This document shows, piece after piece, positions 37,611 to 61,339 of a DNA stretch of 64,000 nt. The notes beneath the pieces were generated by a model. The model made no database searches. It saw only the letters and a program-made list of their open reading frames with translations, and was not told the origin of the DNA. A program made the position numbers and the translations under genes. How positions within the stretch are numbered: the stretch's first letter is position 1; every line of letters begins with the position of its first letter. The stretch spans positions 250,980,055 through 251,044,054 of the forward strand of contig NC_133622.1 of assembly GCF_048593235.1 (NCBI RefSeq). Direction: 5' to 3'. Source of the DNA: Sminthopsis crassicaudata. Lineage: Eukaryota.

Positions 37611-45157
<7,547 letters not shown>

Positions 45158-45159
45158 GG

Positions 45160-45620
45160 CCAGGGTCCTGGGGGCGGGGCCGGGGTCGCAGCTGGAGCCC
45201 CTGGGGCGCGGCGCGCGCCCTACGCCCGAGCCATTCGCCAGAGGCGGAAATGCGCCGCGCGCACTCGCGGCGTCACTGCTCGGAATGCAGACCCGCGCCT
45301 GCGCACCAGAGCCTCTCGGGCCGCGCGCGCGCTGCGCGCACCCGCCTGCGGAGGCGGGGCGGACTGAGTGCGCAGGCGCGGGGAAGTCACCGCCGAGCAG
45401 AGCAAGGCCTCGGTGGGGCAAGGAGGCTTCGAACCCCGGCCGGCTTCACGGGGCTTTAGTTTAAATCTTTTCCTTCGGCTCTTCTAATCGCTTCTGCGAG
45501 ACGTCAAGGACCTAGTTCCCACCCAAGGCGGGTTGGGCGGGGCGGGTAGGCCGCGCCCTGATTGGCGGAGAGCGCGACGCAGGTACGTGTTTGCGTCATG
45601 CGTCTGCGAGAAGCACGTGG
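45160..45620 (-). promoter_or_regulatory. RELA promoter CpG island
   Basis: CpG-dense sequence upstream of ATG 45157, with GC boxes (ggggcgggg 45174-45183, gaggcggggcgg ~45351), NRF1-like TGCGCAGGCGC ~45369 and CCAAT (ATTGG ~45561). Confidence 0.8.
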
Positions 45621-45914
45621 CCCCTGGACACTCCAGGAGGGGCTAGAGGACTCCCCAGAGCAGGTGGGTAAAGAAGGCCGGCTTTATAAAACTTTGATAA
45701 AACACCTACTGTGCGCACAACCCTGCTCCCGCCGGAACGGGGGAGAAGACGTCCAAGGACGAGCCCCCGGGATGCTTGGGGTCACGAGCAGAGCAGGGGT
45801 CGACCCGGGGGGCAGGAGCGGTATCGGTCTCGTATGTTGAGCCCGCTGGACGCCGCTGAGCGTCCTTGGAGTTCGGGAAGAAATTCCCTCCGGTGTAGCC
45901 CTGGCCCCGGCCTC

Positions 45915-48210
45915 AGACTTAGAAACCTTCGCTTTATATTGCAAAGCCAGGTCCCTTTATTCTTTGTACCATCCTCCTGGAAAAAGCCATCTACACTAGG
46001 TGCCTCTACTGTCCCTCCTGGAAAAAGCATCTACACTAGGTGTCTCTACTGTCCCTCCTGGAAAAAGCATCTACACTAGGTGCCTTCTACTATCCCTCCT
46101 GGAAAAAGCGTCTACACTAGGTGTCTCTACTGTCCCTCCTGGAAAAAGCGTCTACACTAGGTGCCTCTACTGTCCCTCCTGGAAAAAGCATCTACACTAG
46201 GTGCCTTCTACTGTCCCTCCTGGAAAAAGCGTCTACACTAGGTGCCTCTACTGTCCCTCCTGGAAAAAGCATCTACACTAGGTGTCTCTACTGTCCCTCC
46301 TGGAAAAAGCATCTACACTAGGTGCCTCTACTGTCCCTCCTGGAAAAAGCATCTACACTAGGTGCCTTCTACTGTCCCTCCTGGAAAAAGCGTCTACACT
46401 AGGTGTCTCTATTGTCCCTCCTGGAAAAAGCATCTACACTAGGTGCCTCTACTGTCCCTCCTGGAAAAAGCATCTACACTAGGTGTCTCTATTGTCCCTC
46501 CTGGAAAAAGCATCTACACTAGGTGCCTCTACTGTCCCTCCTGGAAAAAGCATCTACACTAGGTGCCTCTACTGTCCCTCCTGGAAAAAGCATCTACACT
46601 AGGTGCCTTCTACTGTCCCTCCTGGAAAAAGCATCTACACTAGGTGTCTCTACTGTCCCTCCTGAAAAAAGCATCTACACTAGGTGCCTCTACTGTCCCT
46701 CCTGGAAAAAGCATCTACACTAGGTGCCTTCTACTATCCCTCCTGGAAAAAGCGTCTACACTAGGTGCCTCTACTGTCCCTCCTGGAAAAAGCATCTACA
46801 CTAGGTGTCTCTACTGTCCCTCCTGAAAAAAGCATCTACACTAGGTGTCTCTACTGTCCCTCCTGGAAAAAGCGTATACACTAGGTGCCTTCTACTGTCC
46901 CTCCTGGAAAAAGCATCTACACTAGGTGTCTCTACTGTCCCTCCTGAAAAAAGCATCTACACTAGGTGTCTCTACTGTCCCTCCTGAAAAAAGCGTCTAC
47001 ACTAGGTGCCTCTACTGTCCCTCCTGGAAAAAGCATCTACACTAGGTGCCTCTACTGTCCCTCCTGGAAAAAGCATCTACACTAGGTGCCTTCTACTATC
47101 CCTCCTGGAAAAAGCGTCTACACTAGGTGCCTCTACTGTCCCTCCTGGAAAAAGCATCTACACTAGGTGTCTCTACTGTCCCTCCTGAAAAAAGCATCTA
47201 CACTAGGTGTCTCTACTGTCCCTCCTGGAAAAAGCGTATACACTAGGTGCCTTCTACTGTCCCTCCTGGAAAAAGCATCTACACTAGGTGTCTCTACTGT
47301 CCCTCCTGAAAAAAGCATCTACACTAGGTGTCTCTACTGTCCCTCCTGAAAAAAGCGTCTACACTAGGTGCCTCTACTGTCCCTCCTGGAAAAAGCGTCT
47401 ACACTAGGTGCCTCTACTGTCCCTCCTGGAAAAAGCATCTACACTAGGTGTCTCTACTGTCCCTCCTGGAAAAAAGCGTCTACACTAGGTGTCTCTACTG
47501 TCCCTCCTGGAAAAGAACGGCTGCTCTAGGCAGTTCCACTGACTCCTTTCACTTTCTTCTTTTCCTCTTACAATGGAAACTGCTCTTCCATTAGTTACTA
47601 ATGACCTCTTGTGGCCTTTGCCCTCTCCTCATTCTCCTTGACTTCTGCAAGCATGGATGCTGTTGGTCACTCTCCCTTTGAAACTATTCTCCATAGTTGG
47701 GGGGATCACCCCCCCTTCTCCTCCCTGATATCTTGTTCTGTCTGTGGTTAGATCCTCTTCCAGATGACAGCTTCCAACCTTAGGCTCCCAGTGGGCTTAA
47801 AGTTAATGGGAGCCCATCTTTCCTCCCCCCATCCCACCTTCCCTCCCCCTAGCCTCTCAGGCTTAAAATCCAAGAGGGATTCTGAATATCCCCCCCCCAC
47901 ATTCATATCCAACATGGTGCTGATTTTACTTTTGTACCGTCTCTCCAATACACCCCCATTTCTAAGAGGGCCCCACCCTGGGGCAGACCCCATCACCTCA
48001 TACCTGGACTATTGCAATGGCTGGTCCCCCCCCCCTTAATTCTGATGCCTTCCTCTTCCGTGTATATTTTCTCTATATATAGCTTGTTTGCTTATTGTCT
48101 CCCCTATTAAATGTGAGCTCCTCGAGATCAGGAAGCGTCTTTCAGCCCTTTGCTTAGCCACCCCACTGGCACATAATGAGCACTTAATAATTGTTTATTT
48201 GCTGACTGAC
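45915..48210 (+). mobile_element. Degraded L2 LINE (RT-region fragment to 3' tail) interrupted by the minisatellite
   Basis: 47515-48030 carries L2-like tracts (gaaactgctctt..ttactaatgacctc, cttgac..tgatgctgttggtcactc, tacctggactattgcaat). 48070-48210 is a typical L2 3' end (tgtctcccctattaaatgtgagctcctcgag...gcacttaataattgtttatttgctgactgact). Assigned from recalled consensus. Confidence 0.75.
45973..47514 (+). repeat. 40/41-bp minisatellite, ~38 copies, consensus GCATCTACACTAGGTGCCTCTACTGTCCCTCCTGGAAAAA
   Basis: Directly visible head-to-tail array with no spacers. Variable positions: gca/gcg, gcctc/gtctc/gccttc, actg/acta/attg, ctgg/ctga. Confidence 0.98.
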
Positions 48211-49749
48211 TTCACATGAAACCGTTTATGGGATGGCCACATAAGCCACAGCAGCTGCCTGGGTTTCTAGTGTCTTTACAAGGGTGATGAATTCCTGAAA
48301 GGAGGAACACAGTTTCTTTCCACAGGTCTCCAGGGTCCGGTAATTGCAGGCTTGGGAGACAACACCTATAGTGGTGAAGTTCCCCGAGTGACTTTGTAGC
48401 CCTTAGCAGAATTAGAGGATCATGCTTGTTACAAAGAGCAGCCGAGTAACGGCAGCCCCTGGAGGGGCAGAGATTAGGAAAAGCAGGACCGGGTCCATGA
48501 GGCTCAGGGCCTTTGCAGGGCACTGTGTCAAGTCTGCAGTCTTGGTTCTCCCAGTGGCCATCCCTCCCAGGAATTACGAGGCCTGGCCAGGATAGGACCG
48601 TGGACTACTCTGGTATTTATATAGCTCACTTGAGGACCAGGACAAAAGCCTTGACCAGATCAAGGATTATCTTCAGAACCTCATCCGTCAAGACCCTGAA
48701 AAGTTTATGATCTCAGACTCTTCACGGAAAGGAAGAAGAAATAACATCTCCAAGGACTTCATCTACTGGATTAGCTTGATGCCAAGAATATTCTGGGTTC
48801 ACAAGGAGTAGAAACTCCAACTTGGAATCCTAAGTGACGTATCTGGCACTGAGATGTTTTAGTGATTTCTCAGGGTTGGGCCAGGACTTAGCGACACTAA
48901 GCCTGGTTCACTCCTCAGAAAACCCCAGTGGCTCCTTGTAGCCCTGACGTCAAGTGTCTGTTCCCCTGTTTAGCATTTCAAGCACTTCCCAAGCTGACCC
49001 CATCCAACCTCTCTAGTTTCTCTGCAAAGGACTTCTCTCCTGGCACTGGAAGCCAACATCTGAGTCTTCTTAATCCTCCTCACGGAGGATGCTCACATCA
49101 TTGCTGAACCCCATGCTCTTCTGCCTCATTTTTGACTTTTAAAATTCTGAATTTATTGTGTGTGAGAGAGAAATGGAGAGAGAAAATTTCTGTATACAGA
49201 GTAGGACAGAAAAAAGTTGTATATGGATTCATGACCATGGTTTACAAATTGAAAACTCCGTAATTTTACCGGAATGTCCTGCTCCTCCAAGTTTCATTCT
49301 ATTCCCTTCTGTGCATTTTCCACATTACTTTAGTGATCTTCTTTACTTTCTGTTCTTTTGGGGGTAGTAGCTGCCCCAAATAAAACAAGACAAAAACAAC
49401 ACAATCTTTGGAACGATTAACCATGGCAGAACCCAAATCCAACCATTTGGATTTCCAGCTCTCAAATTGCTCTGCACCATGGGAAAGTTATCACTTCTGA
49501 CAGGTGATGGAGAGCCCATTTTCTCCTTGGCCCACTGGACTTGTGACGGTTTCTCGAGTTGATCAGAATCCTTAATCCTTCAATGGAGGTTTTCTCTATA
49601 GTCAAACCCTGGATTTTCTTGGAGGCTTAACTTCAACACCCAGGGCTTTTCCTGGTCCCCCAGCAGGAAGCTAAGGCCTTTCCTCAAGATTAACTTGTAT
49701 GTGTTTTGTTTGTGTGTTGTTTTCCTCATGTTGGAATACAATCTCTTTG

Positions 49750-50129: not shown

Positions 50130-50690
50130 AGGCATCTTAGAGGTCTGTCTGCCTCTAGTCTCTCCCTACTCCTGTCCATTCTCCTCTATTCAGTGACTAA
50201 AGGGATTTTCCTAGAAAGCAGATCCTCACCATGTCATTCCCTACTCAGTAAATCCAGTGGCTCTCCATTGCCTGCAAGATCAAAAGCAGATTCCGGTTTG
50301 ATGTTCCAAGCTCCCTTCTAGTACTCTTTGATCTGGTGACACTGGCCTTTTTGGTGCTCTGAACAAGCCCGTTCAACTCTGGGTTGCAGGCATTTCCTTC
50401 TGGCTGCTTCCCATACCTGGAACATTGTTCCTCCTCATTTCTGTGAAATTCCTATATGTCTCTTAACTAAAAGCCCATTTTTACAGGAAGCCTTTCTCTT
50501 TCTTAATTCTAGTGCTTTTCTTCTATTTAATTACTTCCTCTTTTTCCTGCTTATATAGCTTGTTTGCATATAGCTGTTTGCCTGTTGAGGAAACCCCATT
50601 AGATTGTGAGTTTCTTGAAGGCCCTTTTGGTTTCTTTGTATCCCCAGCATTTAGCACATAGCAGGTGCTTAATAAATGCTTATTGACTGA
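50130..50690 (+). mobile_element. L2 3' fragment
   Basis: aaatccagtggctctccattgcc...attagattgtgagtttcttgaagg...ttagcacatagcaggtgcttaataaatgcttattgactga. Confidence 0.8.
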
Positions 50691-50948: not shown

Positions 50949-51496
50949 TGTTATGGGCCAGAACTTGAAACAAAGTATTCAGTGGAATTAGGAGACAATG
51001 GTTAAGTCTTATTTAGCATTGATTTAATTCTACAACAAATAATGGCTTCCTAGTGCTGAAATGATTGGTGTATACTCAATGGGCAGCATATAAGCAGGAA
51101 GCTCTCAGGGCAAGAGGGGACTTTGGGAGGTTCACAACTAGCATTGACTTCAGGGAGATTCACAAGCCCAGGGAAACCCACAATCCTACTCTCAGGGGCG
51201 GAGTCAGTCATTCCCACTGCCACTGGATGGAGACATTGGGAAGATGAGAGGTTGAAGCTGGCAGAGACAAAGGACTAGCAACAAGAGCTCTAGGGGAATC
51301 AAGGAGAGAGATAGGCCTCTAAGAAAGCCAACTGGGCCCAAGGAAGGAGACAAGACTTGAAGGAGAAAATAAAAGACTTTAACTTCTGGCTGCATTTGGG
51401 ATTATTGAACTGAACTGAAACTAAGGCTGCTCCCAGAAGCTCCCCAAGAGATGTGCTCCCAGAGATCCATTATAATTTAGAGAAGAGAACGTTACA
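50949..51496 (+). mobile_element. Solo ERV LTR (~550 bp)
   Basis: TG...CA termini (TGTTATGGG...GTTACA), near-identical flanks GGAGA/GGAAA as a likely 5-bp TSD, ATTGG 51064, TATA-like CATATAAG 51087, AATAAA 51368. Confidence 0.75.
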
Positions 51497-54699: not shown

Positions 54700-55128
54700 A
54701 CAGGGGCGGCGCTCTGTAGGGCGGGGCTCCGAGTTTCGAGCAGGGAATCTCCAGGCCCCTTCTGAACAACAACAACCGCATCACGTGGTCGCTAGAAGCC
54801 ACGTGATCCCGACGCGCTCGAACGACGTCACTTGAAGGACCCCGCTCTCTTCCAACCAGAGGGCGAGGCTCGAGGTCTCGCCCCGCCCCGGAAACGGCCT
54901 GGGGCCCCGAGCTTGTCCCTACGCTGCCTGACCTCCTGGAGGCCGAGCGCTCCTGGAAGTGAGCCGGCCTCGCCGCCCGTGCCGCGTCCTTGGTCGCGGA
55001 CTCCTTCCCCTCCGCCCGGAGGCCTCTTCACTCCTACACTCCTAGAGCTGGCACCGGGGAGGTGCCGGTACGCCGGACGTGACGTCACCCCACGGGGCCG
55101 GAAGCGGCTCCTGAGGGAGGGAGGGAAG

Positions 55129-55130
<2 letters not shown>
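54700..55130 (+). promoter_or_regulatory. KAT5 promoter
   Basis: E-boxes CACGTG 54782-54787 and 54800-54805, CRE TGACGTCA 55080-55087, ETS CCGGAAG 55098-55104, YY1-type AAGATGGCG overlapping the ATG. CpG-rich. Confidence 0.85.

Positions 55131-61339
<6,209 letters not shown>

Follow-up and report, generated by a model that had tools for sequence, protein, structure and literature searches.

How does a large, homogeneous minisatellite come to stand beside the RELA promoter region of a marsupial, and does its position there carry any function? We examined 64,000 nucleotides of Sminthopsis crassicaudata DNA (NCBI RefSeq assembly GCF_048593235.1, contig NC_133622.1, positions 250,980,055 to 251,044,054 of the forward strand), hereafter the window, in which a sequence-only reading had noticed the array and proposed that it was born from the reverse-transcriptase coding region of an ancient L2 (LINE-2) element. 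We favor, and hold to be probable as a whole, an explanation in which local growth within a 5′-truncated, decayed L2 produced an ordinary and most likely neutral minisatellite.

The array comprises 38 units and a terminal fragment

Tandem Repeats Finder called an array at 45973-47514 with a period of 40, 38.3 copies, 94% matches, 1% indels and a score of 2700, together with higher-order periods of 121 and 161. No other tandem array in the window comes near its size. A 29-base core of the unit gave 36 matches at three or fewer mismatches across the 64 kb, all of them within the array and all on the + strand, where 100 shuffles gave an expectation of 0. The window holds no other copy of the unit outside the array, and a metagenome scan with the unit returned 0 matches. 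The unit is C-rich on the + strand. With many head-to-tail copies of a unit of 10-100 bp, the array has the structure of a minisatellite/VNTR.

We delimited the units by splitting at CCTCCTG. This yielded 38 full units at 45973-47502 (28 are 40 bp long, the other 10 are 41 bp) that fall into 14 sequence variants, and 38 is the copy number as given in assembly GCF_048593235.1. The units vary at G/A in CTGGAAA, A/G in GCATC and C/T in GTGCC, by an extra T in CCTTCT, and as ACTGTC/ATTGTC/ACTATC. Lettered by variant from 5′ to 3′, the array reads I A E J B F B A C F K C L C C F A M E B A D G A D H C E B A D G A D H B A N.

The first unit stands apart. It is 41 bp long (45973-46013, +), reads LLEKAIYTRCLYC, translates to LLEKAIYTRCLY in the frame from 45974, and is the only unit with GCCATC. 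The 37 further units, delimited by Tandem Repeats Finder, core matching and unit splitting (46014-47502, +; 40 or 41 bp, 13 variants), carry GCATC, GCGTC or GCGTA in its place. The first unit is likely to preserve the ancestral state of the repeat. The sequence-only reading had counted about 38 near-identical units of 40 or 41 bp, had given GCCATC and this translation to the first unit alone, and had concluded that later units lost a C; unit splitting and frame translation bear out each of these points.

After the last full unit comes a 13-bp partial unit, CCTCCTGGAAAAG (47503-47515, +), that directly repeats the unit start. Of the 26 bases beyond it, 8 agree with the remainder of the unit, a score that 32% of the 26-mers in the window equal. 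Since the bases past the partial unit are unlike the unit, the array has the layout X-(R-u)38-R-Y, with R = CCTCCTGGAAAA(A)G. We also considered the last block as a diverged unit and ruled this out, as past the shared 13 bp its resemblance to the unit does not exceed that of random sequence from the window.

Unit and flanks read as a putative L2 remnant

ORF2 of the L2 clade follows the order ..KPGK..RPISLL..LSK-LLEK-xVYNRL..YL-x-x-NNLL..QSGFR..HSTETAL.., continuing from HSTETAL through ..VTNDLL..LLDLSAAFDTVDH..GVPQGSVL..SRLDYCN.. to a 3′ UTR with a MIR-like end. Frame translation of the sequence around the array gave a similar succession. Upstream, the left flank (45915-45972, +, its 5′ boundary approximate) reads ..YIAKPGPFILCTI and runs in frame into the first unit as ..YIAKPGPFILCTI-LLEKAIYTRCLYC. 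Its KPG presumably belongs to the L2 reverse-transcriptase block, and the flank would mark the 5′-truncated start of a decayed, putative L2 fragment. Downstream, the right flank (47516-48215, +) reads as a decayed putative L2 with LLEKNGCS..TMETALPLVTNDLL, LLILLDFCK / MDAVGHS, ITSYLDYCNG and a tail ..TGACTGAC. Right after the array one frame reads LLEKNGCSRQFH*LLSLSSFPLTMETALPLVTNDLL; shifted frames further on give LLILLDFCK, MDAVGHSPFETIL and later ITSYLDYCNG; and a MIR/L2-type 3′ tail (..CACATAATGAGCACTTAATAATTGTTTATTTGCTGACTGAC) ends near 48215. At least one internal deletion appears to lie past ITSYLDYCNG, before the 3′ tail. RPISLL is absent from this L2-like copy.

When all six frames of the 64 kb are translated, LEKxxY (45974), TETAL (47570), VTNDL (47594) and LDYCN (48004) turn up at one place apiece, a uniqueness that makes a biased test because the patterns were drawn up after the translations had been seen. 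All four lie on the + strand in the order expected of L2 ORF2.

We take the R of the first unit to be the LLEK of reverse-transcriptase block 2. The terminal R (LLEKN..) presumably sits where L2 ORF2 has a second L-E/S-x-N motif, and this R lies 21 codons upstream of TMETAL, in the same frame. One 41-bp unit lies between the Rs and 63 bp separate the second R from the codon before ETAL, compared with the roughly 36 and 57 bp that we assume for L2. Hence, with LLEKN.. in frame with TMETAL and 21 codons ahead of it, the spacing fits one unit plus flank. When the tail R was taken as the only LLEK, the sequence fell 30 bp short of L2 spacing.

The 3′ end of the element offered an independent check within the window itself. 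Positions 48035-48151 are colinear with 50502-50627, part of a second L2-type 3′ end, and their alignment, which took in sequence up to 50650, scores 28.5. Shuffled controls scored 15.5 ± 2.0 (maximum 22) and the reverse complement 13, placing the match about 6.5 standard deviations above the shuffles. We take the family that shares this 3′ end to be L2.

Two further observations concern LINE-like sequence elsewhere in the window. The second L2-type 3′ end, with its MIR-like tail, occupies 50140-50690 (+). An RPISLL string at 51304-51318 (-) was set aside as chance or another LINE (RTE?), as the residues after it are unlike the L2 context.

Searches of protein resources returned blanks. Pfam found no family, and no RVT_1, at E-values up to 10 in six stop-free flank pieces of 28-95 aa that are broken by frameshifts. 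A PDB sequence search with two pieces had no match, and the ESM Atlas gave no usable match for two pieces. A word-indexed protein search, which needs exact words and a length window, found no match for the open reading frame spanning the left flank and first units, nor for the 95-aa right-flank piece under the same requirements. A full-text literature search on L2 peptide strings brought up irrelevant papers only. For therians, the L2 family is reported to have lost its mobility over 100 Ma ago (PMC4408412). For a family inactive that long, these blanks weigh little, given pieces of 28-95 aa that are full of frameshifts.

Two claims of the sequence-only reading are thereby upheld in part. A reverse-transcriptase origin in L2 agrees with the colinear motifs and the aligned 3′ tail, and found no echo in the Pfam, PDB, Atlas and word searches. 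The L2-like right flank with a 3′ tail at about 48200 likewise gains from the alignment of that tail to 50502-50627, while Pfam and word searches of its pieces were blank. Weighing both sides, L2 identity is likely for unit and flanks, and we rate their putative origin from an L2 coding remnant as likely on motif order, frame and spacing.

Might the unit instead be foreign to L2, with the LLEKAIYTRCLY reading a coincidence and an unrelated sequence having arisen in, or entered, an L2 fragment? The unit is just 40 bp, the left flank holds about 58 bp of putative L2, and a reverse-transcriptase origin comes without a profile or database match for any piece, all of which leave room for such an insert. 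Set against this, both flanks read as L2 ORF2, properly ordered and on one strand; the left flank shares its frame with the first unit, and TMETAL of the right flank shares its frame with the terminal partial unit; and the expected gap is filled by one unit. An unrelated insert should not start and stop inside matching L2 codons. We therefore consider a coincidental reading unlikely and retain the L2 remnant as the source of the repeat.

Short direct repeats may have seeded the expansion

The layout of the array suggests how an L2 remnant could have become a minisatellite. The host would be a 5′-truncated, heavily decayed L2 fragment on the + strand of the RELA-KAT5 intergenic region, and the repeated 41-bp segment would be its former ORF2 reverse-transcriptase block 2 (..LLEKAIYTRCLY..). 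In the probable single-copy ancestor, a second L2 stretch resembling its start (LLEKN..) would have come after this segment, with the two similar stretches 41 bp apart. Such a stretch would have left a 12-13-bp direct repeat, CCTCCTGGAAAA(A)G, on both sides of the segment. The first duplication could then have arisen between these two short repeats, by slippage or unequal exchange. One copy would have lost a C, and the resulting 40-bp form would have spread through further unequal exchange and conversion, with the latest exchange event copying 9 units.

A signature of initiation is present in the assembled sequence: at 47503-47515 the array repeats the unit start and then gives way to non-unit sequence. 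In their human survey, Ahmed and Liang 2012 attribute an incomplete terminal unit to slipped-strand mispairing, and explain direct repeats of 5-20 bp in the flanks by exchange under the Haber-Louis model (PMC3389668). Hairpin-driven slippage was considered as another route and found no support, as three units fold as DNA like their shuffles do (z -0.20). The structure of the array lends good support to a recent in-place expansion via exchange between such short repeats.

An exact nine-unit duplicate points to recent turnover

The longest exact run in the array is a 369-bp stretch at 46666-47034 (+) that recurs without a single difference at 47028-47396, 362 bp (9 units) downstream. The same event is visible in the order of variants, where the block EBADGADH is found twice. 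Units elsewhere in the array differ by about 5%. An exact nine-unit duplicate amid such divergence points to a very recent unequal exchange, or else to an assembly error. The recent amplification and homogeneity that had been proposed for the array are borne out by this duplicate and by the 94% matches.

How far could assembly account for what we see? An array that is genuine, with a wrong assembled length or internal order through collapsed or over-expanded repeats, is improbable in our estimate. The 369-bp exact internal duplicate is the type of feature that assemblers can generate. Across seven studies, however, read runs of organism A contain 40-87% of the words sampled from this stretch, and the many unit variants stand in a non-periodic order, which makes long-read assembly easier. 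A very recent exchange of nine units remains our preferred account of the duplicate. The length of the array is probably variable.

The array belongs to a known kind with an unusual putative donor

Minisatellites tied to retroelements have a familiar counterpart in the VNTR of SVA, the composite retrotransposons of hominids, with a 30-50-bp unit, variable copy number and, sometimes, a place near promoters. In SVA, the VNTR belongs to a mobile element, with which it has been copied to many loci. The dunnart array resembles it in having a 40-bp unit tied to retroelement sequence near a promoter. It differs in that it appears to be confined to a single locus inside a dead element, with no other copy in the window.

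The closer comparison is with minisatellites that expanded locally from transposable elements (TEs). Ahmed and Liang 2012 put the TE-derived share of human minisatellites and satellites at 23%, found younger elements more prone to tandem repeats, and described cases that are mostly two-unit (PMC3389668). The dunnart array shares with the cases covered there a unit that is a putative TE piece, local expansion, an incomplete terminal unit and short direct repeats. It differs from that survey, which concerns human sequence, in its putative L2 donor, and with 38 copies it is much larger than the cases described there. The kind is therefore known, and the dunnart array represents it clearly and at large size, with a putative donor element of unusual age.

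Its interest lies in the tidiness of the case. In textbook fashion, the coding remnant of a dead L2, carrying a short direct repeat in its interior, would have seeded a 1.5-kb minisatellite, and the first and last units still reveal how the array began. The locus would gain importance if this L2 segment proved to be a recurrent hotspot of tandem duplication across L2 copies. It would also gain importance if array length varied among dunnarts and tracked RELA or KAT5 expression, and such a link would matter the more as the dunnart is coming into use as a laboratory marsupial.

The array lies between RELA and KAT5

The window is GC-rich and gene-dense. A stop-free stretch at 44338-44973 (-) matches Pfam RHD_DNA_bind at 6e-39. 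We established the identity of the gene by comparing the genomic open reading frame of exons 6-7 with a representative protein library and then the best full-length p65 match with the word index. Among the proteins returned, transcription factor p65 [Sminthopsis crassicaudata] (P0228) fits the window best, better than the p65 of Antechinus or Sarcophilus; two exons are 100% identical to dunnart p65 and the last exon 97%. The neighboring gene is thus RELA, as the sequence-only reading had named it.

The N-terminus of p65 (P0228) maps to three small exons on the minus strand. Exon 1 begins with ATGGAGG at 45157-45151 (ATG at 45157-45155), followed by the donor GTGAGC, and together with the CpG-island promoter it spans 45151-45600 (-). 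The rest of the gene extends over 37614-44988 (-), with exon 2 of 27 nt (44988-44962), exon 3 (44855-44704) and later exons to the stop at 37614. The core of the CpG island lies at 45201-45600 with an observed/expected ratio above 1, and a CCAAT box at 45565-45561 stands next to GC boxes in the RELA promoter region.

The array starts at 45973, 816 bp upstream of the RELA ATG and beyond the island; inside it the CpG observed/expected ratio is 0-0.27. From the positions of the island, CCAAT box and ATG, the array lies about 0.4-0.7 kb upstream of the likely, predicted start region. Judged by the ATG and the CpG island of the putative promoter, it falls in the first kilobase or so ahead of the RELA start. 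The distance of about 0.5 kb from the RELA promoter given by the sequence-only reading agrees with this placement.

On the other side, KAT5 is arranged head to head with RELA (55129-61030, +; Pfam MOZ_SAS, 1e-08). It opens with MAEV at 55129, 61030 belongs to the last exon located, and the gene has its own CpG island at about 54750-55500. The KAT5 start is 7.6 kb from the array, on the side away from RELA. The array fills 1.5 kb of the 10-kb divergent RELA-KAT5 intergenic region.

Motif content and read content were examined as possible signs of function. On both strands, the array holds no NF-kB, STAT, CTCF-core, E-box (CAGGTG) or SP1 consensus. It does contain 32 copies of the NFAT-type WGGAAAA on the + strand. 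Read runs of 60-850 million letters (X6, X8-X20) contain 40-79% of the sampled words of 45300-48400, and one run labelled another species (organism B) contains 43% of them. These runs are far smaller than the genome of about 3 Gb, so word content this high is beyond chance and implies that the locus is enriched in those libraries. The array accounts for 369 of about 1,870 distinct 31-mers in 45300-48400 (~20%), and its flanks must therefore also be contained in the runs. The enrichment suggests promoter-associated chromatin or a transcript diverging from RELA.

These observations bear on a more ambitious explanation, in which the array is a regulatory module, either as 32 tandem NFAT-type sites or as part of a promoter-divergent transcript, whose copy number tunes RELA or KAT5. 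Its proximity to the RELA ATG, its place adjoining the CpG-island shore, the run of WGGAAAA on the + strand and the ChIP/ATAC enrichment or transcription suggested by the small runs all speak for such a role. Yet the consensus sites listed above are missing, GGAAAA is a weak, generic motif, and the array is CpG-poor, unlike the island; the neighboring promoter alone could explain the enrichment, and the library type of the runs is a guess. We find a regulatory module quite improbable, somewhat more so than either a coincidental L2 reading or a misassembled array. The letters of the array carry no sign of a regulatory role, which would at present count as unsupported, and so would the change in RELA expression between individuals that the sequence-only reading raised. 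The strongest form of the idea, a copy-number-variable module of the divergent RELA/KAT5 promoter region whose array lengths set NF-kB p65 dosage among dunnarts, is the least credible of all and very unlikely. We assume, as most likely, that the minisatellite is neutral.

Mapping of RELA also yielded several observations on the gene itself. Its start codon exon is split off by an intron, and the 27-nt mini-exon that follows encodes DLLPMIFAS. The isoform X2 p65 of Antechinus (P0239) lacks exactly those nine mini-exon residues, and the RELA mini-exon may be skipped in some transcripts. A library protein of 170 aa (P0002) aligns without a break from RELA exon 6 through the intron into exon 7 and so appears to be an open reading frame called on genomic DNA of another species, showing that read-through ORFs exist in protein libraries. 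Finally, a RELA intron carries a separate small repeat at 41955-42047, with 2.3 copies of a 41-bp unit at 98% identity, which looks like a very young small duplication.
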